A DNA stretch of 64,000 bases, from NCBI GenBank assembly GCA_977017575.1, contig CDRNVI010000185.1, forward strand, positions 62,001 to 126,000, written 5' to 3'. The notes under the pieces are model-generated. The model was not told the DNA's origin and ran no database searches. It was given only the letters and a program-made list of their open reading frames with translations. Below are positions 450 through 18,997 of this stretch, one piece after another; the stretch's first letter is position 1, and each line of letters opens with the position of its first letter. Source of the stretch: Paramoeba atlantica (lineage: Eukaryota > Protista > Discosea). A program made the translations under genes and the position numbers.

Positions 450-758
450 AGAAAAAGGGGAGGGGGTCTAAAAAATAAGAAGTAATAATTTTTTTTAGTA
501 TAAAGGTTGTAAAAAAAATCGGTAGTGTTTCCTCATGAAAAAGAAAACGCGGACTTTGGTAAACGAAAAGCTCTTGCGCGAAATGAAATGTACGCGACAA
601 TCGGGAGGTATACTTGTGTAGCTACTGTATCATGTGGTACGTACAAAGGTGAAGCCTATTCTTTTAGTATTGATAGTTGGCTTTTTTTGCAAGACTTAGA
701 TAGCCACATACAGAGACACCTTTTGTTTATTCCGATTTCTTTTTGCCACCTGACAAAA

Positions 759-1481
759 ATGTTTGAGTTCTGTGCATTAGCCTGTGCATTACGTGCAGCT
801 GAGGAACAATCTATAAGTCGTCCTTGTGCAGCGAAGGTGAGCTCTATTACCGTGCCGCAAGAGTACGATTTAATAAGACTTATTCAAAATATGCAGGAAA
901 GACCCCCTAGCTGGAACACCGACACACCTGCATGCGAGTGGGAAGGCGTTGAATGCGACGAGAAGAATCAAGTTAAAGAATTCAGTTGGTGTTTTGAAAA
1001 CCTAGGATTCTTAGTTTGGAAATATTTGCCACAGAGTTAAGTTTCTTTTCGCATGCAACATGGCCATCTTCGCGGTGAACTTCCCTTGGAAGTGTTTCCT
1101 CCGAACCTAACGCAAATATATTTGTATGCGAATCAGTTAACCGGTCATCTTGACTTGCTCCAGCTCCCACCCATACTGGAGGTCTTGGATGTCGAAAAAA
1201 ATCATTTCCATGGCACCGTCGATTTCTCATCACTTCCGACAACTTTGGAGGAACTAAAGCTGTCGAGCAACAGCGAACTCGAAGGTGCGTTTGATGTGGA
1301 TATGCACAGCCCTGATTTGTATTACGACTTTCTGCAAACAAACATTACAGTCTCGGACGGATGTCGAATTCGAGAGCTCTACTTTGATGTGGATGAAGAT
1401 GACGTTGATGAGTATGAAGATGAGGACGTTGATGAGGATGAAGATGAAGAGGACATGCATGTACATGATGATTTGGATTAG
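759..1481 (+). pseudogene. LRR protein with a premature stop
   Basis: ORFs 525-1040 and 1053-1481 share a frame. TAA at 1038-1040 replaces the Leu of the paralog at 19457 (WKYLPQS* vs WKYLPPNL). TPACEWEGVEC cap, LxxLxLxxNxLxG repeats, acidic tail. Confidence 0.85.
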
Positions 1482-1571: not shown

Positions 1572-1624
1572 TTACTGTTAGATAAATGATTACTGTTAGA
1601 TAAATGATACTGTTAGAGAAATGA
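1572..1624 (+). repeat. 18-bp tandem repeat x3 (ttactgttagataaatga)
   Basis: Two exact copies and one degenerate copy. Confidence 0.9.
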
Positions 1625-1763
1625 TTAGAAAAATACTAATACTTCTCCGAATTTTCCTGTTAAAAGTTGATATTTGAGGGGCTGCGGGTGGCGTCCCGAG
1701 AAACCGCGGTATACGATCGGCCCCCCGAGGCCTGGTCCGATAGTAATGTATACCTAAAAAATC

Positions 1764-1772
1764 TTTGATTTT
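1764..1772 (+). repeat. Left copy of the candidate TSD tttgatttt of the retroelement chain
   Basis: Identical 9-mer at 18705-18713, directly after the last poly(A); the left copy abuts the 5' truncation point of the first element. Confidence 0.65.
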
Positions 1773-3225
1773 GCCATAGGGATCCAGGGGGCAATCGCCA
1801 GAGTGGCGGCCAACTTCACAGGCACGCTGAAGGTCTGGGCGTACCTGGATGACGTCACCTTTGCTGGTGAACCCAAGGTTTGCGCGGAAGCCCTAGAGGC
1901 CCTCCGCGAGGAGCTGAAGCATCTTGGGCTACGGTTAAATACTGCTAAATGCAAAGTAGCTACCAGACGCGAGGACCTCTTCTCCGAGTTCTCCGGATCT
2001 CGCATGGTCCACTCCCCCGGGGGGGTCAAATTACTGGGGGCCTTCATCGGGGTGTCGGAGGCTAGGGAGGAAGAATGGGTGCTTTCCAAGGCCCCCAAGG
2101 TAATCTCCTTCCTGGGGAAACTCAAGGACATTAGCAGGCAATGCGCCTTGCCCCTTTTAAGACTCTGTGGGAGTCCTCGATGGAACTACATCGTAAGGAC
2201 CCACGACCCCCCGGTCACTAAAGTGGCCAATACCCAGGTCGACAAAGCCGTCCTGGCATGTGCTGAGGCCTTGCTCGGGGGGATGGGCTCCTTGGGAAAA
2301 ACGCCGTTCTCCAATAACCTTTTCACGGCAGATTTCCTGGGGACCATCCCCTTCGCGCACAAGGCGGAAGACATGCAGGCCAAGGCGAAGAACGCCCTAC
2401 AGGGCCGACCCCAAGGCATGTCAGCCAAGGAACAGCGGCGCAACCTCTGTGAGGCCGCGTTGGGGAAAGCCCCGACGGCCACCCAACTGGTCTGCATGCG
2501 ACAGACCCAGAACATTCACTCCACTAAGTGGATGAACGCATGGCCCAACAGGCCGGAGTATTACATGCGGGACCCGCAGTGGGAGACTGCGGCCCGTCTC
2601 CGGTACTTGGTCGCCCCCACCTCGGAACCTGAGCTCCAGTGCGTGTGCGGTGCAACCCTCCGCAATGAGGAGTTTTGCGTACACGCACTGGATTGCAAAA
2701 AGGTTAAGGGGAAGACCCAGGCCTCCCGCCACAAGGAGGTCAAGGAAACCTTTCGAAACCTTCTTGTGCAGTATGGTTTCAAACCGGACCTACACGAACC
2801 GAGGTTCGACAATGGACGGGGGCCCGACATATGCTTCCAGCTGGGACGGAAGACTGCCCTAGTTGATGTCACCGTGGTGAACCCATTGGCCCCGTCCTAC
2901 GTGGAGAAGGAGGCCGCAGAGCCCTCTCATACCCTGAGGATGGCAGAGGCCAACAAGCGGCGCTCACACGATGAGATGGCGACCGCCCGAGGGATGGAAT
3001 TTTACCCCTTGGCATTCACCACGTATGGGATCCCGGGCCCAGAGACTTTGAACTTCCTAACCAAGGTGGCCCGGGCTCACTCATCCGACAAGAACGGATG
3101 CATGTCCCACCTTCTGATGGCCATAGGGGTGGCCATCCAGAAAGGTAATGCCCAGATTGTACAGGCGGCAGTACAGGACTGGTACCGCCGCGGGGTACGA
3201 GGCTAGCTGGGCGATGGGATTAGGG

Positions 3226-3259
<34 letters not shown>
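1773..3259 (+). mobile_element. 5'-truncated CRE-clade non-LTR retrotransposon, family B
   Basis: RT C-terminal part (AYLDDVT), CCHC knuckle (CVC...HALDC), RLE motif (GPDICF..LVDVT), very short 3' UTR, A34 tail at 3226-3259. Confidence 0.9.
1803..3206 (+). CDS. RT-RLE polyprotein, C-terminal part (family B)
   Basis: 467-aa ORF with YLDD and a PD-(D/E)xK-type endonuclease motif. Confidence 0.88.
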   Translation: MAANFTGTLKVWAYLDDVTFAGEPKVCAEALEALREELKHLGLRLNTAKCKVATRREDLFSEFSGSRMVHSPGGVKLLGAFIGVSEAREEEWVLSKAPKVISFLGKLKDISRQCALPLLRLCGSPRWNYIVRTHDPPVTKVANTQVDKAVLACAEALLGGMGSLGKTPFSNNLFTADFLGTIPFAHKAEDMQAKAKNALQGRPQGMSAKEQRRNLCEAALGKAPTATQLVCMRQTQNIHSTKWMNAWPNRPEYYMRDPQWETAARLRYLVAPTSEPELQCVCGATLRNEEFCVHALDCKKVKGKTQASRHKEVKETFRNLLVQYGFKPDLHEPRFDNGRGPDICFQLGRKTALVDVTVVNPLAPSYVEKEAAEPSHTLRMAEANKRRSHDEMATARGMEFYPLAFTTYGIPGPETLNFLTKVARAHSSDKNGCMSHLLMAIGVAIQKGNAQIVQAAVQDWYRRGVRG

Positions 3260-3262
<3 letters not shown>

Positions 3263-3381
3263 GTATACCCCCCCCCAATGGACCTACTTGGTTCGTCTAC
3301 TGGGTCAAAATATAGAGGCAATGCCGCGTTTCATACTTCTCCCCCCTTATTAATCGCAAAAAAAAAAAAAAAAAAAAAAAA
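3260..3381 (+). mobile_element. 98-nt 3'-terminal fragment (tail C) plus A24
   Basis: Near-identical to about 13225-13318, 13604-13701 and 18591-18687. Confidence 0.85.
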
Positions 3382-3964
3382 CTCCTTTCACGAGACCAAG
3401 CGCGAAACGATCTCCTAACAGATCTGAACGTGACGCTAATGCGTTCTCAAGCCAGGATGATGGTTTCGCGCATCCGCGTAGAGGACCCAGCGGATCCTTT
3501 GGTAGAGGCTTAAGCCTCTACTGACAGTCCAGTTTCAGCACGAAGACGCCATAATATCCAGGACGGGTGCTGGCCGGGTCGACAGAGTCTATGCTCACGC
3601 CTAGCCCGCGAGGGCTAGGTACCCCAAGTGAGGTAGTACACGGGTAGTGAATCTCCTCCCCGTCGGCCAGCATCCTGTTTCGCGACCGTGTCGCTGTCGA
3701 CACAGGCCCGCGCCTGCGCCCTCCCGTATAACAAGGGAAGGGTCCACAAGTCAGGCCGTGGAGAGGTCGAAAGACCCGGTCCGGAACGCGCGAATGGTTG
3801 AGGAGCCGCCTGCAGGCCGGGTGAGGCGAAGCTGAGGGAGACCTTACCCCCCTGAAAAGTTGAAAAGTTGGGTAGGGGAAAGCAGGAAAGTAGGGAGAAA
3901 GGTGGGAAAAGTATGTCAAGAGGTGAGAAAGAGGAGAAAGAGAGAGAAAAATTTTCTTTATTTG

Positions 3965-3995
<31 letters not shown>
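3382..3995 (+). mobile_element. Heavily 5'-truncated family-A element (variant A4) plus A28
   Basis: Translates to LLSRDQARNDLLTDLNVTLMRSQARMMVSRIRVEDPADPLVEA*, homologous to the A1/A2/A3 C-termini; followed by the structured 3' UTR module. Confidence 0.88.
3566..3797 (+). ncRNA. Structured 3'-UTR RNA module, copy 1
   Basis: Conserved across copies with compensatory changes; GCGA and GAAA tetraloop hairpins. Confidence 0.75.
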
Positions 3996-4011
3996 CGATA
4001 AAGATTTAAAA

Positions 4012-4046
4012 TTTAACGATAAAGATACAGTTTCTGTACCTTGTTG
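4012..4046 (+). ncRNA. Spliced-leader exon sequence at the 5' end of element A1
   Basis: tttaacgataaagatacagtttctgtaccttgttg contains the kinetoplastid SL core GATACAGTTTCTGTAC and terminal TTG; it is not followed by GT. Confidence 0.88.
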
Positions 4047-4087
4047 AAATTTTTTTACGCAGTATTCTCTCGGGGCCCAGCTCTTTT

Positions 4088-7000
4088 ATGACGCAAACCA
4101 ATACTCCTCAGAGCCCCGCACGCTCGAACGAGGACCACCCCTCATCCCATATGAGTGCAAAGGAAGGAACTCTCAGCGTAGGCGCTCTCGCCGACGAAGA
4201 ACGTGCCCACTCCCTCGGCAGTTGGGACCAATTCCAAGGAAACAAGCATTTGATTCGCGCTGTCAGCACATACGACGAACAACTCTACACTACACCAATC
4301 CCGGAGAATATTCCTAAGGAATGGTTGGAACGCGCACGTCACATCTCCCAGGAAAAGGAAACCCCAGACACGGGCCACGTAGAGGCCGAAGACGAGGAGA
4401 TGCAGCACTGTGGAGTGAGAAGGCAGAAAATTACTCACGAGGCTACACCCACATCAAAGATCCCCGATGAAACTCGGACGCTCAAATCCGCAGTGAAGGA
4501 TGCTCTTTCCCACCAAGGTCGAAACACTTCCCCATCGAAAGGAGTGACCAAAGCGGACTCGCGCTCGTCAAGGCGAACACCGGAGCCCCGGACATATTTC
4601 TCTTCACCGCGACACGCCGCAAACCAAAATAACTTCGCTGAAAAGACACAAACAAGAGAAGAGACTCGGGAATGTCCGGCCATGGGATGCACTTGGAGAA
4701 GTCTGCCGCACGGAGGGTCTTGGCAAGCGTTTTATAACCACGTCGCGTGTCGCCACGGAAACGGAGTTCCCGCTACCTGGTGGGATGCAGAAGGCCGATT
4801 TCTTTGCAACTTATGCGGGCGCCATTATGACATCAACAAAAGGGAAGCTCATCCACAAGCCTGCAAAGGGAACGTTGCGAACCCCCAAATCCCATCGCGC
4901 GCAGCACACTCGAGCGTCCCAAGCCACCTTCCGGGGACTCAAACTCATCACTCTGAACTTCCCTCGCTATCCTCTATCTGCACGCTGCGCCTGAACACTT
5001 GCAAGGACGTACCTCCACGTTGCCGTCAACTGTGGGGAGAAATTATCACCAAAGCAGCCCAAAACGCAGTCACCGAAAACTCTACAGCCGCGTGGACCCT
5101 ATTCGCCATGCTCCCCAAGTGCTTACTACCCGCCCCACACCGAGGAGGACGTAAGAACCACACAACTTACGCATCATACGTCCAGAAGTGCATGAACCGA
5201 TGGCTCGCGCAAGATTATGTCTCCCTATGGAATGAAGCAGTAGACAACGCACTCAAGAAACAATCTGTAGCCCCTACAACCGTTCACGACGAAGAGGAAA
5301 AGGCAGCTATCCGAGCAGAGCTTCTAGCTCGACAAGGCGAGTACTCTAGGGGTATGGCTGCACTCACGGCGGATGCTATGGCCCCTGACGACGAAGATAC
5401 ACTCCTCAAACTTCAGAGCAAGCACCCGCCCCGACATCCAGACAGTGACATCATCGACTATACGCCTCCGCCCACAGCGCCCCTAATAATGGATGAACGC
5501 GTGGTAGCGAAAACTATCAAGAGCTTTCACCGGGGATCCTCGTCCGGAACCATGGGTTTACGACCCGAGCACTTGCAAGCTGTACTCCTGGCGCACGTAG
5601 ATAACACCGTGAAACCCCTTACTGCCCTTAAAAACCTCGTGAATCATCTACTAGCCGGGAAAGCACCCCTAGAGGTACAACCATATTTTGCGGGAGCCAG
5701 ACTTTGCGCGCTTAAAAAGGGCGAAAATGACGTCCGCCCCATAGCAGCGGGAGAAACGATACGTCGATTGGTAAGCAAAGCGGCTTGCAATGCAGTGAGG
5801 AGCAAAGCCAGGGAATTTTTTAAGGGACTACAGTTCGGCGTCGCGACACCGGCCGGTTCGGAACGAATAATTCACACTTGCCGGCACGCAATGACAATTC
5901 ATACGGACAACCCCGACATGGTATTATGTAAAGTCGACCTAAGCAACGCATTCAACAACGTTAGCAGAGCAACTTTCTTGAAACTTGTAGGCGATCATTT
6001 TCCGGAATTGTTCCCCTGGGCTAGCTGGTGCTATACGACAACTAGTGCTTTGACCTATCGTTACCACACACTCCTTTCGGATGAAGGCGTCCAACAGGGC
6101 GATCCCCTGGGACCACTTTTCTTTTCACTGGTCTCCTTGGAACTTGCAAAAGAAATCTATCACCAGGCCGACCTGGACTTGCAGCTATGGTACCTAGACG
6201 ACGGGATTCTCATTGGCAGGGCAGAAGACGTCAGGAATTCGTTGGATACAATCGCCAGAGTAGGTCCGCGATGGGGCCTATATCTGAACATGTCCAAGTG
6301 CGAAATAATCACCCCCCCTGCCTCGGCTAACGTTGTAACCATATTTCCGGACATACCCGACGCCAAAATAAACGTGTGCGGTAACTTTAGTGTCCTAGGA
6401 AGCCCAATTGGGTCCCCTGAGTACTGTACTGAATATCTGCTGACACACGCGGTTGAGCCCGCCGAAATGGCCCTTGATGCCATAACCAGAATCCGGGACC
6501 CCCAGGTAGCCATGGCGCTAATTCGACAATGTGCTGGATTCTGCAAATTGGTACATGCTCTACGAACGACGCCCCCGCAATCAGTTATGAACCTCTGCAA
6601 GCGGCTCGACGACTTCCTAATGCACGCGGTCGAATCCACTCTATGTCCTTTGCCTCCCTCCGCACGCGCCCAAATTCAGCGCTTGAAAAGACACGGAGGT
6701 TTCGGTTTAAAATCGTCGACCGTGCACGCATCCTCCGCTTACGCCTCCTCTGTAGTTTTCGCGGCGGCCACGGACTCATGGGATGCTTCAGAAGTGGAGG
6801 GCTTTCTACAATCGATTGAAGACGTGAACTCGAAAGTTGGTATCAGTCTACTCGACTCAAACGGACTCGTGCGTTCCATCCCGCGCCATAAATGTGAAGA
6901 ACTCTCCCCCAAAGCTCGCTTCACCAAGAGATCTCGCGAGGGAGAAACCAGACATCCCTTTGAACCCGCAAATCCGCCTTCCCTTCCTCGTGACCGCGCA

Positions 7001-7954
7001 TTGCCTCATTCCGAAGACTTTCCACACGATACAAACCCCCTTTACGCATCCGAAGATTGCGTTGACGCGGATCCACCCGACTGGGCAAGTAATAGCGTCC
7101 CCCGCCAAAAAGACATAAGTTACGCGATCTCTGCCACAGAGTTCTCGCACGCATATGAAAACGCCGACGCCCGGACTCGCGCACGCTGGGCTTCTCAGTG
7201 TGGTAAAGGAGCAAGCAGCTGGGCGTTCGTAACTCCTTCCAGAGACACGGGCCACGCCTTTAACCCCACAGAATTCCGCATCCTATCCAGCTGGTGGTTA
7301 GGTGTGCCCGTGTACGGGGAAGAAGGTACATGTCCCAAGGGGAACTGCACACTCCCATTGGACATACACGGCGATCACGCTCTCACATGCAAGCACGGGG
7401 ACGGTATCATCGGCCGTCACAACGCCTTGGCCGATCACTTTGCCGATACTTGCAGTAACGCACGCCTAGCTCCCCAACGGGAAAAAAGCCTCGGGAACCG
7501 GGGCCCCGGAGGCGCTCTGACTAGACCCGGGGACGTCTTCCTTCCGAGTCTCTTCCTCGGGAAACCTATCGTGCTTGACTTCGCGGTCACTCACGCCCAG
7601 CAATCTAAATACACGGACACAGTCCGAAATGCTAGCTGGGTGGCCGCGGGGTCCTTCGCAGAGCATTATGCCTCAGAGCAGAAAGTCCGACAACGCCGTG
7701 AATCTGAAGATGCCGGAAGCGATTTCACAGCTATGGTGGTCGAGAGCTATGGCTCTTGGAGTGCCAGTGCTTTAGCCGTTCTCCGGAAGGTTGGAGAACG
7801 AAGGGCAAAAGCGTCCAACGGTATCTTGACAGACGAGGCCTCTACGCTCCGTCTCGTGACCGACATGAACGTAACATTGATGCGTTGCCAGGCACGCATG
7901 ATGATTACGCGCCTGCCGGCTGTGGACCCCTTGCCCCCTTTAATCGAGCAATAG
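4088..7954 (+). CDS. 1288-aa LsmAD-ZnF-RT-CCHC-RLE polyprotein
   Basis: N-terminal C2H2 and CCHC fingers; RT motifs (VRPIAAGE, VDLSNAFN, GVQQGDPLGP, WYLDDG); HALTC/RHN knuckle; RPGDVF..LDFAVT endonuclease. Confidence 0.95.
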   Translation: MTQTNTPQSPARSNEDHPSSHMSAKEGTLSVGALADEERAHSLGSWDQFQGNKHLIRAVSTYDEQLYTTPIPENIPKEWLERARHISQEKETPDTGHVEAEDEEMQHCGVRRQKITHEATPTSKIPDETRTLKSAVKDALSHQGRNTSPSKGVTKADSRSSRRTPEPRTYFSSPRHAANQNNFAEKTQTREETRECPAMGCTWRSLPHGGSWQAFYNHVACRHGNGVPATWWDAEGRFLCNLCGRHYDINKREAHPQACKGNVANPQIPSRAAHSSVPSHLPGTQTHHSELPSLSSICTLRLNTCKDVPPRCRQLWGEIITKAAQNAVTENSTAAWTLFAMLPKCLLPAPHRGGRKNHTTYASYVQKCMNRWLAQDYVSLWNEAVDNALKKQSVAPTTVHDEEEKAAIRAELLARQGEYSRGMAALTADAMAPDDEDTLLKLQSKHPPRHPDSDIIDYTPPPTAPLIMDERVVAKTIKSFHRGSSSGTMGLRPEHLQAVLLAHVDNTVKPLTALKNLVNHLLAGKAPLEVQPYFAGARLCALKKGENDVRPIAAGETIRRLVSKAACNAVRSKAREFFKGLQFGVATPAGSERIIHTCRHAMTIHTDNPDMVLCKVDLSNAFNNVSRATFLKLVGDHFPELFPWASWCYTTTSALTYRYHTLLSDEGVQQGDPLGPLFFSLVSLELAKEIYHQADLDLQLWYLDDGILIGRAEDVRNSLDTIARVGPRWGLYLNMSKCEIITPPASANVVTIFPDIPDAKINVCGNFSVLGSPIGSPEYCTEYLLTHAVEPAEMALDAITRIRDPQVAMALIRQCAGFCKLVHALRTTPPQSVMNLCKRLDDFLMHAVESTLCPLPPSARAQIQRLKRHGGFGLKSSTVHASSAYASSVVFAAATDSWDASEVEGFLQSIEDVNSKVGISLLDSNGLVRSIPRHKCEELSPKARFTKRSREGETRHPFEPANPPSLPRDRALPHSEDFPHDTNPLYASEDCVDADPPDWASNSVPRQKDISYAISATEFSHAYENADARTRARWASQCGKGASSWAFVTPSRDTGHAFNPTEFRILSSWWLGVPVYGEEGTCPKGNCTLPLDIHGDHALTCKHGDGIIGRHNALADHFADTCSNARLAPQREKSLGNRGPGGALTRPGDVFLPSLFLGKPIVLDFAVTHAQQSKYTDTVRNASWVAAGSFAEHYASEQKVRQRRESEDAGSDFTAMVVESYGSWSASALAVLRKVGERRAKASNGILTDEASTLRLVTDMNVTLMRCQARMMITRLPAVDPLPPLIEQ
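4217..4423 (+). other. Ataxin-2/Pbp1-like LsmAD domain inside the A1 ORF (aa ~44-112)
   Basis: WDQFQGNKHLIRAVSTYDEQLYTTPI...ARHISQE...H...DEEMQHCGVRR against the recalled LsmAD pattern WDQF..N..lFgv.StydE.lYTt.l...riA.Eie...H...DEEdkySgV.R. Confidence 0.8.
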
Positions 7955-8010
7955 CACGATGACGGATGTGCAAGATGGGCCGCTCAGCCGGAACTCGAAC
8001 AGCTGGTCCG

Positions 8011-8247
8011 GATGCTGGTCGATGCCGGCAGGGTCTATGCTCACGCCTAGTCCGCCAGGGCTAGGTACTCCAAGTGAGGTAGGACATGGGTAGGGAACTT
8101 TGTTCCTCCCCGTCGGCCAGCATCATGCTCCGCGACCGTGCCGCTGTCGGCACAGGCCCATTGCTTGCGCCCTCTCGTACAACAAGAGAAGGGTTAACAA
8201 GGTAAGCTGGGAGAGGTCGAAAGACCCGGTCCGGAACGCGCGAATGG
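8011..8247 (+). ncRNA. Structured 3'-UTR RNA module, divergent copy 2 (A1)
   Basis: Shows compensatory pairs relative to the other copies. Confidence 0.75.
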
Positions 8248-8510
8248 TTCGGGAAAAGTCTGCCCCTCCTAACCGAGGGAGACCTTACCCTCCCTGGAAA
8301 GCTGGTAAGATTGGTAAGGGGAAGTGGGTAAGATGGGAAAGCATGTATTTGCTAGTTATATATTTTGCTGGTTTTCAAAATGGGGGGAAGTGAGGGAAAG
8401 AAGTTGAGCAAGTAGGAAAGTAAGTGAGAAAGTCATACCGTACATACATATATAAAATTAGAACTCGTACTCTTCCCCCCCTATTATCTGCAAAAAAAAA
8501 AAAAAAAAAA

Positions 8511-8629
8511 TAGATGGTTTCTTTGAGGGGTGGAGATAAGGGAGAGAAGCGGGCGAAGTTGATAAGGGCGAAGTAAAGTAAGTAGGAAAGTAAGTAAGAA
8601 AGTGATACCAAAAAAAAAAAAAAAAAAAA
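8511..8629 (+). mobile_element. Purine-rich RNA 3'-end fragment (tail D) plus A20
   Basis: Core is identical to 9398-9457; lies between two poly(A) tracts. Confidence 0.7.
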
Positions 8630-9315
8630 TCTTTAACGATAAAGATACAGTTTCTGTACCTTGTTGAATTATTTCCCCTTTTCTTCCATACACCATCTTC
8701 CAGACCATGGGAGGGCACCCCCCTCAAATACACTCCTTTTTGTCGGCATCCCCCTTCCCCGTCTCGTCCCATCACCCCCCTGCGCCGCATCCCCCCACAT
8801 CACCCTCCCTCCGCAGTGCGCTTGCCCCCCTGTTGTGTTTCTCTCTCGCGTCCCCCACCCCCGTGTCAGCAGCCAAAAGTATACAATACTTGCTCACGGG
8901 GTGGGGGCAGAGTTCCTGGCAGATGGGCCCGTGCTTCGCCTCCTCTCGCCCCTGCGTCAGTCCCCCCGTGTCTCTCTCCGCGCTCTTCTCCCTCGGCGTG
9001 ACGACGTCTTTGTGTTTCGTGGCCTCCACGTCTCCCACCCTCGTACGGCAACCAAAAGTATTTATTACTGCTAACGGGGTGGGAGCGGAGGTGCAGGACC
9101 ATACGGGCCTGGGTGCATGCGGATCGGTGAGTGGGGTAGGGAGTGAGGGAAGGGAAGTACGAGAGGGCTAAGAGGAGTAGGTGTGGAAAGTATGGGGAGT
9201 AAGGGAAAGCGAAGGGCCGTAAGTGTGGAAATTGTGGAAAAGTTGGACTCCATACATAAAAAGTTAGACTCAATACTATTCCCCCCAATTATTTGCAAAA
9301 AAAAAAAAAAAAAAA
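8630..9315 (+). mobile_element. SL-capped, polyadenylated non-autonomous retro-copy (~690 nt)
   Basis: SL exon 8632-8666, no RT coding, internal ~42-nt imperfect direct repeat (8870-8912 / 9049-9090), CCCCCC-AATTATTTGC-A19 end. Confidence 0.8.
8632..8666 (+). ncRNA. Spliced-leader exon sequence, second copy
   Basis: Identical 35-mer to 4012-4046; followed by AATT, not GT. Confidence 0.88.
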
Positions 9316-9458
9316 GGGCAAAGTTTGGAAGGCGCGGATGGATGCTCGGGGGGGGGGAAGTGAGGGAAAGAAGCGGGTGAAGTCGGAAAGTCGCGGATGG
9401 TTTCTTTGAGGGGTGGAGATAAGGGAGAGAAGCGGGCGAAGTTGATAAGGGCGAAGTA

Positions 9459-9490
<32 letters not shown>

Positions 9491-9494
9491 AAAA
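9316..9494 (+). mobile_element. Longer tail-D fragment plus poly(A)
   Basis: Shares its core with 8513-8574 but uses an earlier poly(A) site. Confidence 0.7.
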
Positions 9495-10111
9495 CCTTTG
9501 CGGAGCGCTATGCTACCGAGAACAAGAGAAGACAACGGGAAGAGGCTAACACGGCTGGGTACAAGTTCGCGGCAATGGTAGTAGAGTCCTATGGCGCCTG
9601 GAGTCCCAGCGCCATGGCGGTTCTTAGGGAAATTTCAACTAGAAAGATGGCGAACTCAGGGGATACCCTCCCTAAAAGCGATGCCTTGCATCACCTCCTT
9701 TCATCTCTCAACATTACCCTCATGAGGTCGCAAGCTCGCATGCTTGTATTACGATCCCCAGCGGCGGTCCCTGACACAGTGCTCTTAGGTTACGGAAAAG
9801 AGGAGTAGGAGCTCAGTAGGAAAGTGAAGGAGTCGGTGTCAAGGGAGGAGGCCTCGTTTCTATTTGCTGGTTTTCTCGGGTGGTTTCTTTTTGGGGCTTT
9901 GGGTATTCGTTTTTTGGGGAAGGTTTTTTTTGGGGGTGGGAACGGGTTCTTATTTGCTGTTTTTTGGGCCGTTTGCTCGGTTGAACATTCTTTTACTTTT
10001 CGTACAGTTGCTTGTTTCTATTCTGAGCCTAACTTTAAAAAAAAAATGTGAAATTGCTAATTTGATTGCTTGTTTACAAATCATATAAAAAAAAAAAAAA
10101 AAAAAAAAAAA
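9495..10111 (+). mobile_element. 5'-truncated A2 3' end plus A25
   Basis: Near-identical to 12641-13226 (ORF C-terminus and UTR). Confidence 0.9.
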
Positions 10112-10370
10112 CCCGTGTCGCTGTCGACACAGGCCCGCGCCTGCGCCCTCCCATATAACAAGGGAAGGGTCCACAAGTCAGGCCGTGGTGAGGTCGAAAG
10201 ACCCGGTCCGGAACGCGCGGATGGATTGGGCGTGGATTGCTTCCTTTTTTATTATTATTGTTATCAGAATCATAAATAACTTAAGGCAGGTTGAATTACT
10301 AGTTTTGGGCTACAACATGTGAAATTGCTAATTTGATTGCTTGTTTACAAATCAAAAAAAAAAAAAAAAA
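10112..10370 (+). mobile_element. 3'-UTR fragment (second half of the structured module plus tail) and A17
   Basis: Begins inside the module at the gtgtcg/cgacac hairpin. Confidence 0.8.
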
Positions 10371-13344
10371 GACTTTGAATCGTAAGAAACGTGCTGCGCA
10401 AGCAACAAGCCTAGAAGACGAGGGGAAGAAAGCGTGTCTTCGCGCGGAGCGACTGGCCCGCGACGGAGAACTTTCTCGCGCCATGACCGCACTGACTTCT
10501 TCGCCGCTAGCACCAGACGACGACAACACGTACGCCAAACTTCAGGCCAAACACCCCCCACGAATCTCCGCATCCACAACATCCCCCAGCTTAACTCCGG
10601 AAACAGAACCACTCAAAGTCACCGAGGAAGAAGTCGCAGCTGCGCTCTCAACCTTCCACAGAGGATCATCAGGTGGCGCACTTTGCCTCCGCCCAGAACA
10701 CGTGCAAGCGGCAATGCAATATCACAATGACGGGCACACAAATCCACTGGGCACGCTCACAAATTTCACCAACCATATGCTCGCTGGGAAGTTACCACTC
10801 GACGTTCAAGACCACTTTGCCGGAGGAAGGCTATGTGCTTTGGAAAAGGGAGAACACGACGTGCGCCCAATAGCCGCTGGAGAAACGCTCCGCCGTCTGG
10901 TGAGTAAAGTGGCCTGCCTATCAGTAAAAGCGCGAGCCCGCAAAATTTTCAAAGGCCATCAGTACGGGGTAGCCACGCCCGCCGGGGCCGAGCGAGTTAT
11001 ACATCTGTGTCGCCAGGCCTTTGCTGCTCGCACGGAAGATGACGACTTTGTTCTCTGTAAAATCGACCTACGTAATGCCTTCAACCAAGTTTCAAGGGAC
11101 TGGTTCATAGCACTAACACGCGAGCATTTCCCCACGCTTACTCCTTACGTCGAATGGTGCTACACTTCGGAAAGTAAGCTTACCTTTGGAACACGCGTTA
11201 TTAAATCTCGTGAGGGTGTCCAGCAAGGGGACCCCTTGGGCCCTCTTCTTTTCTCGTTAGTCATGAGGGAAGTCGCCTCAGAAATTCACGCAGCAGCCCC
11301 CAAATTAGACCTAAACCTCTGGTACCTGGATGATGGCGTTTTGGCTGGCACTTCCTGTGATGTGCGACACGCGTTCGACGTTATCGAAATGAAGGGTCCA
11401 CAATGGGGCCTACACCTCAACGCTGCAAAATGCGAGATTATTACCCACCCAGCATCTTCTCATCGTTCTTCTGTTTTTCCCGATCTCCCTGGCCCTAACA
11501 AAAACCTCGAAGGCAATTTTTACATTCTGGGAAGCCCCGTTGGATCGCCAGAGTTTTGTCGTGAATATCTCGTCAACAATGCAGTCGAAATGGCAGAAGA
11601 TTCTCTGGACGCTATAACGCACCTCGAAGACCCCCAGGTTGCCTTATCCCTCATTCGTCACTGCACTGGCTTCTGCCAGATGGTTTACTCCCTACGAACA
11701 ACCCCAACATCTGAACTTCGGGATCTCTGTCGGCGCTTGGACGACGCCGTGCAACGCGCGGTAGAGAATTTTTTCCGTCCTCTGACCCCCGAGGCCCGCC
11801 GTCAAACACAACGAGACAAGCGATTTGGCGGGTTAGGACTCCGTTCCGCGGAAGAGCACTCTACTTCAGCCTATATCGCCTCTGTCGCATTTGCATCGGA
11901 GCTAGATCGCTGGGACCCCACGGAGGCAGAAGGTTTCGAAGAAGCCGTAAGCGATGTCAATAAAAGGGTGGGGAAAGACATCGTAGACATTCAATCAGGG
12001 AGAATACCGAAAGGTTTCGCCTTGTCATCCACTCCGCCTTTCAGTAAACGTGGCATTACAGAATCCAGTACCGAATCAGTAATCCCTCGGCAACGAGATC
12101 TAAGCGATGCAATATCATCTCACGAGTTTCATCAAGCACTCTCCCTCGCTGACCCACGTACGAGGGCTCGATGGATTTCGGAAACGGGGCACGGAGCAGC
12201 AGAATGGGCTTTTGTATTGCCGTCGAAAAAGAACGGCCACGCTTATACCCCAACCGAGTTTCGGACTCTGGTACGTTGGTGGCTAGGGGAGCAAATATAT
12301 CCGGGTCCCCGATCTTGTCCCATGGAGAAGTGCACCCAACCGTTGGGTCCTGAGGGCGATCACGCATTGGCTTGCAAAAGTGGACATGGTATCACCTCGC
12401 GGCATAATGCCCTGGCCGCAGAATTTTCTTCTGAATGTTCTAAGGCTGGGTTCACTACCCAGAGGGAAATGAGCTTGGGAAACAAGGGGCCGGGGGGCGC
12501 CCTCACCAGGCCTGGTGATGTCTTCATCAAAAATTTCGGGCTTGGCGAGGGTCTTGTGCTTGACTTTGCCGTCACCCATGTACAGCAACAAAAATATACG
12601 GACTCAGTCCGTGACGCTAACGGGGTGACGGCCGGGTCATTTGCGGAGCGCTATGCTACCGAGAACAAGAGAAGACAACGGGAAGAGGCTAACACGGCTG
12701 GGTACAAGTTCGCGGCAATGGTAGTAGAGTCCTATGGCGCCTGGAGTCCCAGCGCCATGGTGGTTCTTAGGGAAATTTCAACTAGAAAGATGGCGAACTC
12801 AGGGGATACCCTCTCTAAAAGCGATGCCTTGCATCACCTCCTTTCATCTCTCAACATTACCCTCATGAGGTCGCAAGCTCGCATGCTTGTATTACGATCC
12901 CCAGCGGCGGTCCCTGACACAGTGCTCTTAGGTTACGGAAAAGAGGAGTAGGAGCTCAGTAGGAAAGTGAAGGAGTCGGTGTCAAGGGAGGAGGCCTCGT
13001 TTCTATTTGCTGGTTTTCTCGGGTGGTTTCTTTTTGGGGCTTTGGGTATTCGTTTTTTGGGGAAGGTTTTTTTTGGGGGTGGGAACGGGTTCTTATTTGC
13101 TGTTTTTTGGGCCGTTTGCTCGGTTGAACATTCTTTTACTTTTCGTACAGTTGCTTGTTTCTATTCTGAGCCTAACTTTAAAAAAAAATGTGAAATTGCT
13201 AATTTGATTGCTTGTTTACAAATCATATACCCCCCCCAATGGACCTACTTGGTTCGTCTACTGAGTAAAAATATAGAGGCAATGCCGCGTTTTATACTTC
13301 TCCCCCCCTATTTATTGCAAAAAAAAAAAAAAAAAAAAAAAAAA
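10371..13344 (+). mobile_element. 5'-truncated CRE-clade element A2
   Basis: RT-RLE ORF; 3' UTR lacks the structured module; A26 tail. Confidence 0.92.
10372..12951 (+). CDS. RT-CCHC-RLE polyprotein of A2, N-truncated
   Basis: GVQQGDPLGP, LWYLDDG, HALACKSGHGITSRHN, RPGDVF..LDFAVT; no internal stops. Confidence 0.92.
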   Translation, partial: TLNRKKRAAQATSLEDEGKKACLRAERLARDGELSRAMTALTSSPLAPDDDNTYAKLQAKHPPRISASTTSPSLTPETEPLKVTEEEVAAALSTFHRGSSGGALCLRPEHVQAAMQYHNDGHTNPLGTLTNFTNHMLAGKLPLDVQDHFAGGRLCALEKGEHDVRPIAAGETLRRLVSKVACLSVKARARKIFKGHQYGVATPAGAERVIHLCRQAFAARTEDDDFVLCKIDLRNAFNQVSRDWFIALTREHFPTLTPYVEWCYTSESKLTFGTRVIKSREGVQQGDPLGPLLFSLVMREVASEIHAAAPKLDLNLWYLDDGVLAGTSCDVRHAFDVIEMKGPQWGLHLNAAKCEIITHPASSHRSSVFPDLPGPNKNLEGNFYILGSPVGSPEFCREYLVNNAVEMAEDSLDAITHLEDPQVALSLIRHCTGFCQMVYSLRTTPTSELRDLCRRLDDAVQRAVENFFRPLTPEARRQTQRDKRFGGLGLRSAEEHSTSAYIASVAFASELDRWDPTEAEGFEEAVSDVNKRVGKDIVDIQSGRIPKGFALSSTPPFSKRGITESSTESVIPRQRDLSDAISSHEFHQALSLADPRTRARWISETGHGAAEWAFVLPSKKNGHAYTPTEFRTLVRWWLGEQIYPGPRSCPMEKCTQPLGPEGDHALACKSGHGITSRHNALAAEFSSECSKAGFTTQREMSLGNKGPGGALTRPGDVFIKNFGLGEGLVLDFAVTHVQQQKYTDSVRDANGVTAGSFAERYATENKRRQREEANTAGYKFAAMVVESYGAWSPSAMVVLREISTRKMANSGDTLSKSDALHHLLSSLNITLMRSQARMLVLRSPAAVPDTVLLGYGKEE

Positions 13345-13725
13345 CACAGGCCCGCGCCTGCGCCCTCCCACATAACAAGGGAAGGGTTCACAAGTCAGGC
13401 CGTGGAGAGGTCGAAAGACCCGGTCCGGAACGCGCGAATGGATTGGGTCTGGATTGCTTGTTTTTATTTTTACTGTGTCTTGTTTGTCGTATATACTTAG
13501 GGGAGATTGAATTGCTAGTTTTGGGCTGAGAAAAAAGAAAAAGAAAATATACTTCTGTGGAAATAAAAAGAATTGCTAATTTGATTGCTTGTTTTAAATT
13601 CATATACCCCCCTAATGGACCTACTATGTACTTGGTTCGTCTACTGGGTCAAAATATAGAGGCAATGCCGCGTTTCATACTTCTCCCCCCTTATTAATCG
13701 CAAAAAAAAAAAAAAAAAAAAAAAA
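13345..13725 (+). mobile_element. 3'-UTR fragment (partial module plus tail C) and A24
   Basis: Starts within the module at cacaggcccg. Confidence 0.8.
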
Positions 13726-14326
13726 CTCCTTTCACGAGACCAAGCGCGAAACGATCTCCTAACAGATCTGAACGTGACGCTAATGCGTTCTCAAGCCAGG
13801 ATGATGGTTTCGCGCATCCGCGTAGAGGACCCAGCGGATCCTTTGGTAGAGGCTTAAGCCTCTACTGACAGTCCAGTTTCAGCACGAAGACGCCATAATA
13901 TCCAGGACGGGTGCTGGCCGGGTCGACAGAGTCTATGCTCACGCCTAGCCCGCGAGGGCTAGGTACCCCAAGTGAGGTAGTACACGGGTAGTGAATCTCC
14001 TCCCCGTCGACCAGCATCCTGTTTCGCGACCGTGTCGCTGTCGACACAGGCCCGCGCCTGCGCCCTCCCATATAACAAGGGAAGGGTTCACAAGTCAGGC
14101 CGTGGTGAGGTCGAAAGACCCGGTCCGGGACGCGCGAATGGATTGGGTCTGTATTGCTTGTTTTAGTTTTTACTGTTTCTTGTTTGTAGTATATACTTAG
14201 GGGAGATTAAATTGCTAGTTTTGGGCTGAGAGAAAAAAACAAAAGGTACATCTGTGGAAACAAAAAGATTTGCTAATTTGATTGCTTATTTTCAACTCGT
14301 AAAAAAAAAAAAAAAAAAAAAAAAAA
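13726..14326 (+). mobile_element. Second copy of the truncated A4 3' end, with tail C, plus A26
   Basis: Same 5' truncation point as 3382; full module at 13910-14141. Confidence 0.88.
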
Positions 14327-14368
14327 GTTGGACTCCATACATAAAAAAAAAAAAAAAAAAAAAAAAAA
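14327..14368 (+). mobile_element. 16-nt micro-fragment plus A26
   Basis: gttggactccatacat matches 9243-9258 of the SL-capped non-coding RNA. Confidence 0.7.
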
Positions 14369-17300
14369 CGTGACGAGAAAAAAAATACGTGACGAGCACG
14401 AAGACAGCGTGACACCTGAGCCCACTCAAAACGGTAAACAAAAGCGCCGCCGAGAAATAGCGAAAAGCTTCTCGAATTATTTTCCTACGACAGGTCACCG
14501 GACAGACAAAACACCAAGCGGCAAATACCAACTTCCTCCGTCTGTAGCCGCATTCCGCAACACGCCTCAGGACTCTTTGAAAACTTGCCCAGTTAAAGGG
14601 TGCGTGTGGAAAACACTCGCTCATGGCGGCAGGTGGCAAGCTTACTACAACCACGTAGCTACAAGACACGCGAATGAAGTGCCCGAATCCTGGTGGACGA
14701 ACGAAGGGCGCTTTCTCTGCCAGAAATGCGGGCGACATTACGAAGAAGGCAAACGAGCAACACACGACAACGCTTGCAAAGGAACCTCGACTGACTCTGT
14801 AGCCAATCCCGCGAATAACTTGACGCAGAGTTCATTGGACCACGGTTCGCGCAGCACCGATGTCTCACAGAGTGTCCAACCTCTTCCTTTACCATCGCTT
14901 TCTGATATTTGCATGACTCCTATCAACACTTCTAGGGATGTTCCATTCCGATGCCGCTACCAATGGGCGAAAACGCTCACCGATGTATTATCCTCCGTAG
15001 CCAGCGAGAACTCCGTAGCGGCATGGACCCGTCTCGGCATGCTGCCTAAATGCGTTCTACCGGCCCCGAACCGCGGGGGGCGCAAAGGTCGTCTTTCTTA
15101 TGCCTCACATGTGACAAAAAGCCTAGAAAGGTGGGGAAAAGGGGAATTTACCGCTCTGTGGATTGAAGCGACCAAAAACAACACGAAGTCGTCGCACCCA
15201 TCAACCAAAGACCAAGATCAAGACCAGGAGCTTGCGCAAGAAGTAAGAAGGGCAAAAGAACGATGCGAAAAACTTGTACGCCAGGGTGAAGTCTCTCGTG
15301 GAATGAGTGCACTAACGGCGGCACCCTTTGCACCTGACAACGACGAAACGTACTGCAAGTTGATGGCAAAGCATCCCACTCGTGCGCAGGACTGCATGCT
15401 TCAAGATCTCCCGTACCCTAACGCACCTCCCTTGAAAGTAAACGAAGAAGAAGTTAAGCACGCTTTGGGCAGCTTTCGCAAGGGATCATCTGGCGGAACG
15501 ATGTCGCTGAGAGCTGAGCACCTTCAGATAGCACTACGTGCCCACGTGGACGAGAAAGTACACCCTCTCACCGCTCTTACAGACGTAGTCAATGTGCTTC
15601 TTTCTGGAAAAGCTCCATTCGAGATTCAGGAACGTTTCGCTGGGGCCAGATTGTGTGCACTTCAGAAAGGAGAATGTGACGTCCGACCTATAGCCGCAGG
15701 CGAGACAATCCGTCGTTTGGTTGGTAAAGTGGCATGTCTAACAGCCAAGAAAAAAGCTAGTCGCTTGTTTAAAGGAATACAGTATGGGGTTGCCACGCCA
15801 GCCGGATCGGAGAGGGTGATCCACCTCTGCCGACAGACTATGTCCCGCCATGCCGATGACACGAACTTTGTGCTATGTAAGGTGGACCTAGCGAACGCGT
15901 TCAATAGAGTATCCAGATCTGCGTTCATCGCCTTACTTCGCAAACATTTTCCAGAATTGTCAGCATGGGTGGAGTGGACCTACTCCACGGATAGTCTCCT
16001 AACTTACGGTTCCAGAACTCTTCCATCATCCGAGGGGGTTCAACAAGGGGACCCCCTAGGGCCTCTCCTTTTTTCCCTCGTAATGCTCGAAGCCGCGAAA
16101 ATGATCAAAGAAGCACTCCCAGGCAGTCTCCAGCTTCACCTCTGGTACCTCGACGACGGGGTAATAGCCGGTAAGGCCGAAGACGTCAGTTTCGCTTTAG
16201 AGACTCTTTCTCGAGTTGGTCCTAAGTGGGGTCTTCACATCAATACCTCTAAATGCGAAATAATAACGAACCCTGCTTTGGCACACCAAACTGCTCTTTT
16301 TTCCGATATTCCGGAACCCAAGATAAACCGCGAAGGAAATTTTGACATTCTTGGGAGCCCCATAGGCTCTGCTCAACATTGCATAGATTTCCTTACGACA
16401 CACGCCGTGGAACCGGCAGAAGAGACCCTGGAAGCTATAGAAATGCTCGAAGATCCTCAAATTGCCTTGTCATTGATCAGACAGTGTGCGGGTTTTTGTC
16501 AAATGGTCCATTCGCTTCGAACTACCCCACCACATGAGCTTTCTGCACTCTGTCAGCGCCTTGATGAAGCAGTCCTCCATGCGTATGAATGGAACATATG
16601 CCCGCTTAGCTCCTCAGCTCGATCACAAGTTCAACGCCCGAAACGGTATGGAGGTTTTGGTCTCCGATCTGCATCTGCGCACCGCTCAGCGGCGTACGTG
16701 TCTTCAGTTGCTTTTGCTGCAGCGACGGATCGTTGGCTACCGTCAGATGCAGAAGGATTCTCTTCCGCAGTCCTGGACATCAATCGCCGGAGCGGAGGCC
16801 CCGTAGTTGATCCGGACACGGGAAGAGCATTAGAGGAGATCAGCTCCCCTTTTCCGACAGGATCTAGTCAAAGTACAGAAACGGACAATTCTTGCACCCC
16901 CCGTCAACGTGCCTTGAGTGACGCAATCTCGGCGCACGAATTTTCATGTGCGTACGCAGCGGCGGACAGTAGCACTCGCGCGAGGTACACCTCTCAGACT
17001 GGAGATGGGGCCAGCAGCTGGGCATTTTGCATCCCATCAACAGAGCTTGGCCACGCTTACACACCCACAGAATTCCGCGCCCTCTCCAGGTGGTGGTTAG
17101 GTGCCAAGGTCTACAACGAGTTGAGCACGTGCCCAATTAACACATGCCAACAACCTCTCGACCTCGAAGGAAACCATGCAGTGTCTTGCAAAAGTGGGAA
17201 TGGACTGATCTCCCGCCACAATGCGCTCATTACACAATTCACCGACACGTGCTCCAAGGCGAATTTATCACCTTCACGTGAGGTAAGCCTGGGGAACCTA

Positions 17301-18182
17301 GGGCCTGGCGGCTGTCCCACGAGGCCGGGCGATGTCTTTATTCCGGGCTATGAGAAAGCTCAAGGTCTGGTGCTTGATTTTGCTGTCACCCACGTTCAGC
17401 AACCTAAATACACGGACTTAGTCCGCAACGCTAACGGGGTGGCGGCAGGATCATTTGCGGAGCACTACGCCGCTTCTCACAAGGTGAAAGAGAGAGAGGA
17501 GGCGGAACAAGCAAAACATGTGTTTGTTGCCATGGTGGTAGAATCATATGGTGCTTGGAGTGCAAGTGCCCTATCAATCCTTAGATGGGTTGGGAAGCAT
17601 CGCGCCTCATGTTCCCAGGGGACTCTATCTCAAGAAGCAGCTACCCGTCAGCTGCTTCAAGAGCTTAACCTCACCCTGATGCGTTCTCAATCGAGAATGC
17701 TTGTCTCACGCATGCCGGCTGAAGATCCACAACCGGCACTTATTTTGCAGTAGCCTAAACCAAGGCTCGCGGATCCCGGCATGTTCGAAGGCTGAGGGTG
17801 CTGGTCTCGTCGACAGAGTCTATACTCACGCCTAGTCCGTCAGGGCTAGGTACCCCAAGTGAGGTAGTACACGGGTAGTGAATCTCCTCCCCGTCGGCCA
17901 GCATCCTGTTTCGCGACCGTGTCGCTGTCGACACAGGCCCGCGCCTGCGCCCTCCCGTATAACAAGGGAAGGGTCCACAAGTCAGGCCGTGGAGAGGTCG
18001 AAAGACCCGGTCCGGAACGCGCGAATGGTTGAGGAGCCGCCTGCAGGCCGGGTGAGGCGAAGCTGAGGGAGACCTTACCCCGCCCCCTGAAAAGTTGAAA
18101 AGTTGGGTAGGGGAAAGCAGGAAAGTAGGGAGAAAGGTGGGAAAAGTATGTCAAGAGGTGAGAAAAAAAAAAAAAAAAAAAA
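14369..18182 (+). mobile_element. 5'-truncated CRE-clade element A3
   Basis: ZnF-RT-RLE ORF, module at 17797-18028, A20 tail. Confidence 0.92.
14370..17753 (+). CDS. ZnF-RT-CCHC-RLE polyprotein of A3, N-truncated
   Basis: CPVKGC...HVATRH and CQKC...H...C fingers, WYLDDG, RPGDVF..LDFAVT. Confidence 0.93.
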   Translation: MTRKKIRDEHEDSVTPEPTQNGKQKRRREIAKSFSNYFPTTGHRTDKTPSGKYQLPPSVAAFRNTPQDSLKTCPVKGCVWKTLAHGGRWQAYYNHVATRHANEVPESWWTNEGRFLCQKCGRHYEEGKRATHDNACKGTSTDSVANPANNLTQSSLDHGSRSTDVSQSVQPLPLPSLSDICMTPINTSRDVPFRCRYQWAKTLTDVLSSVASENSVAAWTRLGMLPKCVLPAPNRGGRKGRLSYASHVTKSLERWGKGEFTALWIEATKNNTKSSHPSTKDQDQDQELAQEVRRAKERCEKLVRQGEVSRGMSALTAAPFAPDNDETYCKLMAKHPTRAQDCMLQDLPYPNAPPLKVNEEEVKHALGSFRKGSSGGTMSLRAEHLQIALRAHVDEKVHPLTALTDVVNVLLSGKAPFEIQERFAGARLCALQKGECDVRPIAAGETIRRLVGKVACLTAKKKASRLFKGIQYGVATPAGSERVIHLCRQTMSRHADDTNFVLCKVDLANAFNRVSRSAFIALLRKHFPELSAWVEWTYSTDSLLTYGSRTLPSSEGVQQGDPLGPLLFSLVMLEAAKMIKEALPGSLQLHLWYLDDGVIAGKAEDVSFALETLSRVGPKWGLHINTSKCEIITNPALAHQTALFSDIPEPKINREGNFDILGSPIGSAQHCIDFLTTHAVEPAEETLEAIEMLEDPQIALSLIRQCAGFCQMVHSLRTTPPHELSALCQRLDEAVLHAYEWNICPLSSSARSQVQRPKRYGGFGLRSASAHRSAAYVSSVAFAAATDRWLPSDAEGFSSAVLDINRRSGGPVVDPDTGRALEEISSPFPTGSSQSTETDNSCTPRQRALSDAISAHEFSCAYAAADSSTRARYTSQTGDGASSWAFCIPSTELGHAYTPTEFRALSRWWLGAKVYNELSTCPINTCQQPLDLEGNHAVSCKSGNGLISRHNALITQFTDTCSKANLSPSREVSLGNLGPGGCPTRPGDVFIPGYEKAQGLVLDFAVTHVQQPKYTDLVRNANGVAAGSFAEHYAASHKVKEREEAEQAKHVFVAMVVESYGAWSASALSILRWVGKHRASCSQGTLSQEAATRQLLQELNLTLMRSQSRMLVSRMPAEDPQPALILQ

Positions 18183-18704
18183 TCCTATGGTGGTGACATA
18201 GGCCACGGGTGCTGGTCTCGTCGACAGAGTCTATACTCACGCCTAGCCCGCGAGGGCTAGGTACCCCAAGTGAGGTAGTACACGGGTAGTGAATCTCCTC
18301 CCCGTCGACCAGCATCCTGTTTCGCGACCGTGTCGCTGTCGACACAGGCCCGCGCCTGCGCCCTCCCATATAGCAAGGGAAGGGTTCACAAGTCAGGCCG
18401 TGGAGTGGTCGAAAGACCCGGTCCGGAACGCGCGAATGGATTGGGTCTGTATTGCTTGTTTTAGTTTTTACTGTTTCTTGTTTGTAGTATATACTTAGGG
18501 GAGATTAAATTGCTAGTTTTGGGCTGAGAAAAAACAAAAGGTACATCTGTGGAAACAAAAAGAATTGCTAATTTGATTGCTTGTTTTTAACTCGTATACC
18601 CCCCCCAATGGACCTACTTGGTTCGTCTACTGGGTCAAAATATAGAGGCAATGCCGCGATTCATACTTCTCCCCCCTTATTAATTGCAAAAAAAAAAAAA
18701 AAAA
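18183..18704 (+). mobile_element. Non-coding 3' segment: hairpin, full module (18208-18439), tail C and A17
   Basis: Last unit of the chain; followed by the right TSD copy at 18705-18713. Confidence 0.82.
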
Positions 18705-18997
18705 TTTGATTTTAGTATTCACGTATTCATGTAGTATAGTATTTAGTAGTATTTACGTATTCGCGTATAGTATTCACGGGGTTTTCAACATTTTTCCCGC
18801 CTCTATCACTAAAAACTTGGAACAAGTAATTTATGCGCTCTAAAGAATGCCAACCATCATCAAGGAATCACACGAAGCGTTTTTTGCGCTTTCATTCTTT
18901 TTGGCAACCTATGGAGACACGCGAATACAGCTGAATGTAGCAGCTGAATGAACCATTTAAAAAAGCCTCTTGATGGTAGGTTTTTGAATTTCGTGTA

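Follow-up and report, generated by a model that had tools for sequence, protein, structure and literature searches.

A chain of 15 polyadenylated retrotransposon copies lies head to tail within one target site duplication (TSD) in a 64-kb window (64,000 nucleotides; positions 62,001 to 126,000 of contig CDRNVI010000185.1, assembly GCA_977017575.1) deposited as Paramoeba atlantica. The chain occupies positions 1773-18704 on the + strand, without host DNA between its units (U1 to U15, table 1), at a duplicated T-rich site in the 3′ untranslated region (UTR) of a leucine-rich repeat (LRR) gene. Its units were copied from processed element RNAs, i.e., RNAs capped with a spliced leader (SL) and/or polyadenylated, and the joints between them carry signatures of their own. 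These features rather probably reflect serial poly(A)-directed template jumping by an R2-like protein with a reverse transcriptase (RT) and a restriction-like endonuclease (RLE), in one or a few runs.

The sequence-only reading had described 15 consecutive A-tailed + strand units of 16 nt to 4.5 kb, and all units and tracts were recovered where it had placed them, with unit lengths from 16 nt (U13) to 4,496 nt (U4). The 15 long A tracts span 3226-18704, one of them (U7) being interrupted by a G, and no further A or T run of 12 or more was found across the window. The mixture of RTs and non-coding RNAs which that reading had reported was also retrieved, but the RT families number five R2-like lineages instead of two: family B (U1), A1 (U4), A2 (U10 and U8), A3 (U14) and a stub of A4 (U3 and U12). 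Most of its "non-coding RNAs" proved to be 5′-truncated 3′-UTR pieces of A elements, and the sole separate non-coding family is the SL-headed one of U6 and U13.

The target site and its empty counterpart

The site without the chain was found on two contigs. On an ENA contig (L005), reached via the flanking LRR proteins, window positions 1470-1772 are joined to 18714 onward across a single TTTGATTTT. L009, a transcript contig from JGI, starts with the SL 3′ end joined to window position 703, and the RNA reads through the empty site with a single 9-mer. Since both contigs join the flanks across one 9-mer, the TSD is real and not a chance repeat; the earlier proposal that the 9-mers at 1764-1772 and 18705-18713 form a direct repeat, for which such an empty site had been named as the check, is thus borne out. 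The last TTT of the left copy is common to the B element, so the duplication measures 6-9 bp.

The left flank is 100% identical between L005 and the window over 1,772 bp, and the right flank shows 4 differences in 1,780 bp. L005 represents a collapsed 5.45-kb repeat unit of an assembly possibly made from the same culture, and the empty copy is either a tandem paralogue or an allele; the ENA assembly contains only the empty unit at this site. From the empty-site evidence of L005 and L009 it follows that the insertion is young, that the site belongs to the 3′ UTR of an LRR mRNA and that the leader is the host's true SL. The 17-kb insertion is very recent. A solitary family-B copy (L008), 99.8% identical to U1, reveals the TTT common to site and element and has a 9-bp TSD of its own, TTAATTATT, in AT-rich non-SL DNA.

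Table 1. Features of the chain and its surroundings (window coordinates).
Feature	Position	Strand	A tail	Description
Host LRR gene	703..1481	+		SL spliced to position 703; mRNA reads across the empty site
Left TSD copy	1764..1772	+		TTTGATTTT; microhomology to the B element over its last 3 nt; in LRR mRNA 3′ UTR
U1	1773..3259	+	A34	family-B RT-RLE element, 5′-truncated, ORF remnant to 3206; 99.8% to L008
U2	3260..3381	+	A24	distal 98 nt of 3′ tail type 2
381-bp tract	3285..3665	+		same sequence as 13629-14009, A24 joint included; joint inherited, or tract of gene conversion
U3	3382..3995	+	A28	lineage A4 C-terminal stub, module R, tail 1
U4	3996..8510	+	A19	full-length A1 element, R variant
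U4, SL stutter	3996..4005	+
U4, SL exon	4012..4046	+
U4, open reading frame (ORF)	4088..7954	+		intact, 1288 aa
U4, LsmAD domain	4217..4423	+		ataxin-2/Pbp1-type, N-terminus of A1 protein
U5	8511..8629	+	A20	99 nt of a 3′ UTR from another A lineage (tail 3), with 2 untemplated nt
U6	8630..9315	+	A19	SL-headed (8632-8666) non-coding, multi-copy, non-autonomous RNA; A-family 3′ terminal motif present
U7	9316..9494	+	A20-G-A16	tail-3 fragment, 142 nt
U8	9495..10111	+	A25	A2 3′ piece ending at proximal poly(A) site, 2 untemplated nt
U9	10112..10370	+	A17	half of R, tail variant, 1 untemplated nt
U10	10371..13344	+	A26	5′-truncated A2, ORF to 12951, tail 2
U11	13345..13725	+	A24	half of R, tail 2
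U12	13726..14326	+	A26	A4 stub (start as U3), R, tail 2 to proximal poly(A) site
U13	14327..14368	+	A26	16-nt piece of U6 family; 4-A microhomology
U14	14369..18182	+	A20	5′-truncated A3, ORF to 17753, R, tail 1; 9-nt duplication around A8-TA at start
U15	18183..18704	+	A17	R, complete tail 2; 3′-most unit, where target-primed synthesis would begin
Right TSD copy	18705..18713	+
Next host LRR gene of the 5.45-kb repeat unit	19457..20080	+
Module R copies	3565..3797, 8009..8253, 13909..14141, 17796..18028, 18207..18439	+		in U3, U4, U12, U14 and U15

Joints between the units and competing explanations

Longer donors exist for seven distinct flush joints, and six of the seven show a microhomology of 1-4 A (23% expected, p=9e-4), while three joints hold 1-2 untemplated bases. 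A duplication of its own is absent from 13 of the 14 internal joints. The starting letters common to consecutive units match a random null, and thus there are no per-unit duplications, except that TSDs made entirely of A would be invisible at internal joints. The remaining joint, at the start of U14, has a 9-mer repeated around A8-TA, which may be a later micro-insertion or, equally, an RT stutter. With this exception the chain has the composition of a template-switch chimera, that is, several same-orientation RNA copies inside one TSD and no separate TSD for the inner parts.

In the proposed course of events, the endonuclease would nick the T-rich site and synthesis would start on U15, a unit with both the structured module R and the complete 3′ motif. 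Whenever the enzyme reached the 5′ end of an RNA, or stalled, 0-2 bases would be added and the enzyme would jump to the poly(A) end of another element RNA, with up to 13-14 such jumps, each copying a tail of 17-37 A. The final joining to the target would use the TTT microhomology in U1, and one joint would have come ready-made from a read-through RNA or from later gene conversion. Acceptors would be element RNAs only, speculatively because a single ribonucleoprotein assembly concentrates them, perhaps with a contribution of the LsmAD domain of the A1 protein. Untemplated base addition and template jumps are established for the R2 RT in vitro (PMC8857657, PMC8594491), and in vivo, double jumps have been described within a single TSD (PMC2104539).

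Several observations speak for such serial jumping. There is a single TSD with an exact empty site and an identical left flank. Although A tails make up 2% of the chain, no unit body is broken by another unit, and nested insertions were sought within the bodies and not found in the chain. Where re-insertion at a tail end does seem to have occurred (one unit of the related locus L003 at 7056-7430, flanked by 8 duplicated bp directly after an A tail, and possibly the start of U14), a visible duplication of 8-9 bp was left, and the L003 case shows what re-insertion can look like in this genome. Further, all chain tails are 17-37 nt long; when repeated insertion was simulated with nicks uniform in A runs and a 9-bp stagger, the outcome "all tails 17-40, no visible TSD" had P<=2e-4 under all settings tried, which leave aside a nick fixed at the run's end. 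The A-microhomology of the flush joints and the seven units with premature poly(A) ends are counted on the same side. SL stutters at the 5′ ends of several copies, with variable end points, point to re-engagement at RNA 5′ ends.

Other observations weigh against it. No host mRNA occurs among the 15 units. Family B is 5′-most here and in the chain of another locus (L012), and is solitary with its own 9-bp TSD in L008, as expected if B founded the site before the A elements arrived. Nick positions and tail lengths were assumed in the simulation, and its outcome depends on them. One joint is, on the evidence of its surroundings, inherited and not a fresh jump: U2|U3 and U11|U12 share 381 identical bp between different alleles on both flanks, and this combination implies gene conversion or a read-through RNA. 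Lastly, Logan contigs (8450-14420, 5,971 letters, runs X1-X4) confirmed the units and showed other A-tail joints as loose ends; they bridged none of the internal joints, since A runs are skipped, so the interior order rests on the assembly. The sequence-only reading had left the choice between serial jumping and/or targeting of existing A tails; joint anatomy and tail lengths favour serial jumping over unfocused A-tail targeting, with the inherited joint and perhaps the U14 start set apart from it.

A founder followed by serial re-insertion is rather unlikely as the origin of the whole chain. In that case B would have arrived first with its 9-bp TSD, and A elements would have entered the A tails singly or in short runs by ordinary target-primed reverse transcription, leaving invisible all-A duplications. 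This agrees with the position of B in two chains and its capacity to make 9-bp TSDs alone in AT-rich DNA, with the derivation of all units from RNAs of RLE elements, with the location of most A-family units of the fetched loci after an A run, and with at least one L003 unit that has its own duplication after a tail; the A-microhomology is compatible with it too. Nevertheless, the top strand would have to be nicked precisely where the A run ends in almost every case, uniform nicking having P<=2e-4 in the simulation, and 14 insertions would have to fall here with the flank still matching the empty copy in full and with none in the B copy of L008, which is of similar age. Moreover, the host TSDs seen are T-rich, not A-rich, and visible re-insertions duplicate bases after the tail, which 13 of the 14 joints lack. 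Recycling of older chains, with large parts copied whole from read-through transcripts or moved by recombination and few joints made here, is improbable. The 381-bp tract with its A24 joint, the presence of chains in transcribed regions (L009) and the swapping of R and tails between lineages accord with it, but no other joint of the window recurs in ~190 kb of related loci, where donors reach further 5′ or are cut elsewhere, and the origin of the joints is shifted to another place without being explained.

An assembly chimera with real ends, in which the assembly path strayed among high-copy modules or A runs, or the filled unit was doubled by the assembler, is highly improbable. No contig piece bridged a joint, R and the tails are very high-copy and the ENA assembly holds the empty unit only; against this stand the exact TSD and microhomology at the outer joints, the untemplated bases and copy-specific alleles at the inner ones, the same architecture with different joints in the other assembly, and A-tail joints among the loose contig ends of several runs. 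It is hardly credible that poly(A) ends were first ligated to uncapped fragments of RNA and the product then reverse-transcribed in one long run. Some units do begin close to known cleavage sites (the proximal poly(A) sites of tail type 2 lie a few nt or less from the start of U2), but microhomology, untemplated bases and SL-headed, hence capped, units with stutters are signatures of a polymerase. Moldovan et al. reportedly proposed RNA ligation in 2019 for U6/L1 chimeras.

Chains of similar construction and different joints are found in further loci of the ENA assembly (L001-L004, L006, L007, L010-L012). The L012 chain was fetched through an A protein, and no clear TSD was found for it. In L007 four A1 pieces in a row are followed by a truncated piece of an RT-RNase H element, taken to be VIPER-like; this four-piece chain (5551-15000) links the RT-RNase H element to its own inverted truncated copy, 99.9% identical over 1,675 bp. 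Repeated words of 7-8 bp after A tails (L003 7031-7430 and L004 14261-15060) suggest re-insertion or repeated priming at tail ends. Tandem repeats of 17-18 bp lie directly at chain borders in L001 (6040-6120) and L002 (3380-3600), and an IS630/Tc1-like DDE element (L001 4598-5939) is placed within the 3′ UTR of an A1 copy.

Element lineages and the RNAs from which they were copied

The layout of RT, CCHC knuckle and RLE is common to all RT lineages of the chain. The proteins of A1, A2 and A3 are 52-57% identical among themselves and 24-30% identical to B. The single A1 ORF contains an RT (RVT_1, E 2e-15; YLDD at 702), then the CCHC knuckle (CPKGNC 1082/HALTC 1097) and a PD-D-K restriction-like endonuclease (RPGDV 1146, DFAVT 1164), which is the order of the RLE-type R2 superfamily; its match to the R2Bm chain 8gh6 is weak (E 9e-5). 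Zinc-finger-like motifs (CxxxxC...H and CxxC...H, from aa 196 and 240) precede these domains, as in the CRE clade. The poly(A) 3′ end, the 5′ truncation and the TSD are likewise those of RLE-type non-LTR (long terminal repeat) retrotransposons. An older family-B remnant, 81% identical to U1 and broken by an insert of ~370 bp, is found at window 60406-61629, and a 32-bp 3′ piece of B at 24978.

The 3′ UTRs of the A elements consist of module R and interchangeable tails, and U2, U5, U7, U9, U11 and U15 are pieces of them. Module R is a structured RNA of ~235 nt with two domains, in which 9 pairs show a compensatory change. It is 95-97% identical across lineages with only ~55% protein identity, and the tails switch directly after its 3′ end. 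An Rfam search of the chain and six related loci, module R included, returned nothing significant, and module R used as a DNA pattern had 0 matches in JGI metagenomes. A hand-fitted HDV-like (hepatitis delta virus) ribozyme was rejected, as there is no G-U at +1 and no GG before P4. In seven units the 3′ end is a premature, upstream poly(A) site and the common 3′ motif is absent. Every unit has a best outside counterpart with 97-100% identity; for U3, U9-U12, U14 and U15 this covers partial length.

U4 and U6 begin with the SL exon without the SL intron, and hence were copied from trans-spliced RNA. The SL pieces of the chain are, from this structure, 5′ ends of trans-spliced RNAs and not an SL-gene target. 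In the U6 family the SL is joined at a second site (8679) in run X3. The consensus SL has 40 nt and begins with AACT. Doubled SL heads, i.e., a short SL piece and a variable linker before a near-complete SL, occur at window 3996-4046 and in L001 (238), L006 (1052, 5587) and L010 (8351), with the outer piece ending at nt 7, 20, 21 or 22 depending on the copy. A fixed SL-directed nick (TSD = SL nt 11-20) is weakened by these variable ends, and the doubled heads are best read as re-engagement at capped RNA 5′ ends.

The SL exon followed by GT intron-like sequence is also present at window 29219-29850 and 49494-49700 (SL RNA gene copies); the former copy interrupts an LRR gene and no TSD was found for it. 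The LRR gene upstream of the chain (525-1481) is divided into two ORFs by a stop at 1038-1040, yet it is transcribed and trans-spliced at 703. The host is probably a kinetoplastid-type, Perkinsela-like protist, judging from its SL trans-splicing, its large LRR family, an MMETSP source tag and the similarities to the organism of PMC5601477.

The LsmAD domain and comparison with known systems

The A-family proteins carry a conserved N-terminal LsmAD domain (in A1 of the window and in P0032, P0129, P0131, P0190, P0191, P0003 and P0009), and family B is without it. Pfam LsmAD (PF06741) matches seven of the eight A-family N-termini scanned; P0032 (30.4 bits, cut-off 25) and its family copy in L003 exceed the gathering score, and A1 of the window remains below it (21.9). 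Reciprocally, a profile of the eight N-termini retrieves true SM-ATX + LsmAD proteins of the ataxin-2/Pbp1 type (E 1e-17 to 1e-9), in line with hhalign (98.5%) and Atlas (0.93). A PDB search with the LsmAD profile gave no match, a literature search for a link between LsmAD and a retrotransposon gave only unrelated plant-gene matches, and a survey of ataxin-2 chimeras (PMC12898128) never mentions transposons. The closest non-element matches of the profile, P0220, P0224, P0228 and P0235, have LsmAD in tandem, some with RRM and PDZ, and are candidate donors. Two JGI relatives, P0019 and P0020 (49% identity in the RT region), have instead the MLLE domain of the poly(A)-binding protein (aa 1557-1620 in P0019), and an interface with the poly(A) machinery may here have been captured independently a second time. 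In other organisms, 80 distant relatives (~30% identical, for the most part on short contigs) showed neither LsmAD nor chains, and one A-rich case was dismissed as low-complexity junk.

The captured LsmAD may, speculatively, contribute to the gathering of poly(A) element RNAs in one ribonucleoprotein assembly; a partner on the RNA side is easier to reconcile with jumps to RNA tails than with nicking of A tracts in DNA. A bolder proposal, possible but doubtful, is that an RLE lineage captured LsmAD for this gathering and that its RT routinely traverses a dozen or more RNAs, producing multi-family concatemers in one step and shuffling 3′ modules between lineages.

Most of what is known about serial template jumping comes from in vitro work and from chimeras with two or three RNAs; the present case is unusual in scale, and the empty site anchors it well. 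Bi- and tripartite chimeras of long interspersed nuclear elements (U6/L1; WEIRD/Mg-SINE/MGL of Magnaporthe, PMC2104539) likewise hold several RNA copies head to tail in one TSD, ascribed to template switches in target-primed reverse transcription, but they have 2-3 parts, whereas the present chain has 15 parts over 17 kb with each joint at a poly(A) tail, in a genome where chains are frequent. R2 is not known as a builder of multi-family genomic concatemers. The R2 of Bombyx belongs to the same single-ORF RT-RLE class and shows untemplated addition and serial jumps, although these were demonstrated in vitro and the element is rDNA-specific, unlike the chain (PMC8857657, PMC8594491). Cnl1 of Cryptococcus and MoTeR of Magnaporthe (10.1101/2021.08.11.455996, PMC12810828), also of the R2 superfamily, form long arrays of full and truncated copies for which self-targeting was proposed; these arrays comprise one family, are subtelomeric and gain at most one copy (~3.5 kb) in new gene insertions, in contrast to many lineages in an internal 3′ UTR within one TSD.

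The CRE clade of trypanosomatids (SLACS, CZAR, CRE1/2) shares the single ORF with RT and RLE, the zinc fingers, the poly(A) tail and a kinetoplastid-type host (PMC12278014). Its members insert at a fixed position in SL RNA genes. The target here is an LRR 3′ UTR, that of L008 is AT-rich non-SL DNA, the SL at the 5′ end of copies is a product of trans-splicing without SL intron, and an N-terminal LsmAD is present. By these features the chain elements are not an SL-gene-targeting CRE as defined in that work, and the difference from SLACS, CZAR and CRE1 noted by the sequence-only reading holds. Protein searches brought up no CRE reference protein, their named matches being hypothetical proteins. 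SL-capped retrotransposon RNA, scattered SL fragments and hundreds of leucine-rich genes are also reported for Perkinsela sp.; in the parts of that report consulted (PMC5601477), the retroelements are ingi-like, the SL sequence is different and no chains are described.

If the chain was made in one run, it would represent in vivo serial jumping ~5x longer than that of the tripartite chimeras which the literature search retrieved. Serial jumping, if true, would explain 3′ modules that are ~97% alike across lineages with ~55% identical proteins. The verifiable, dated empty allele together with an intact A1 enzyme makes it testable whether R2-type end-to-end jumping builds genomes and how the RT picks a poly(A) acceptor. 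This also matters for gene-insertion tools based on R2, in which jumping occurs as a side reaction, and the LsmAD fusion may connect a retrotransposon with its host's poly(A)/granule machinery.

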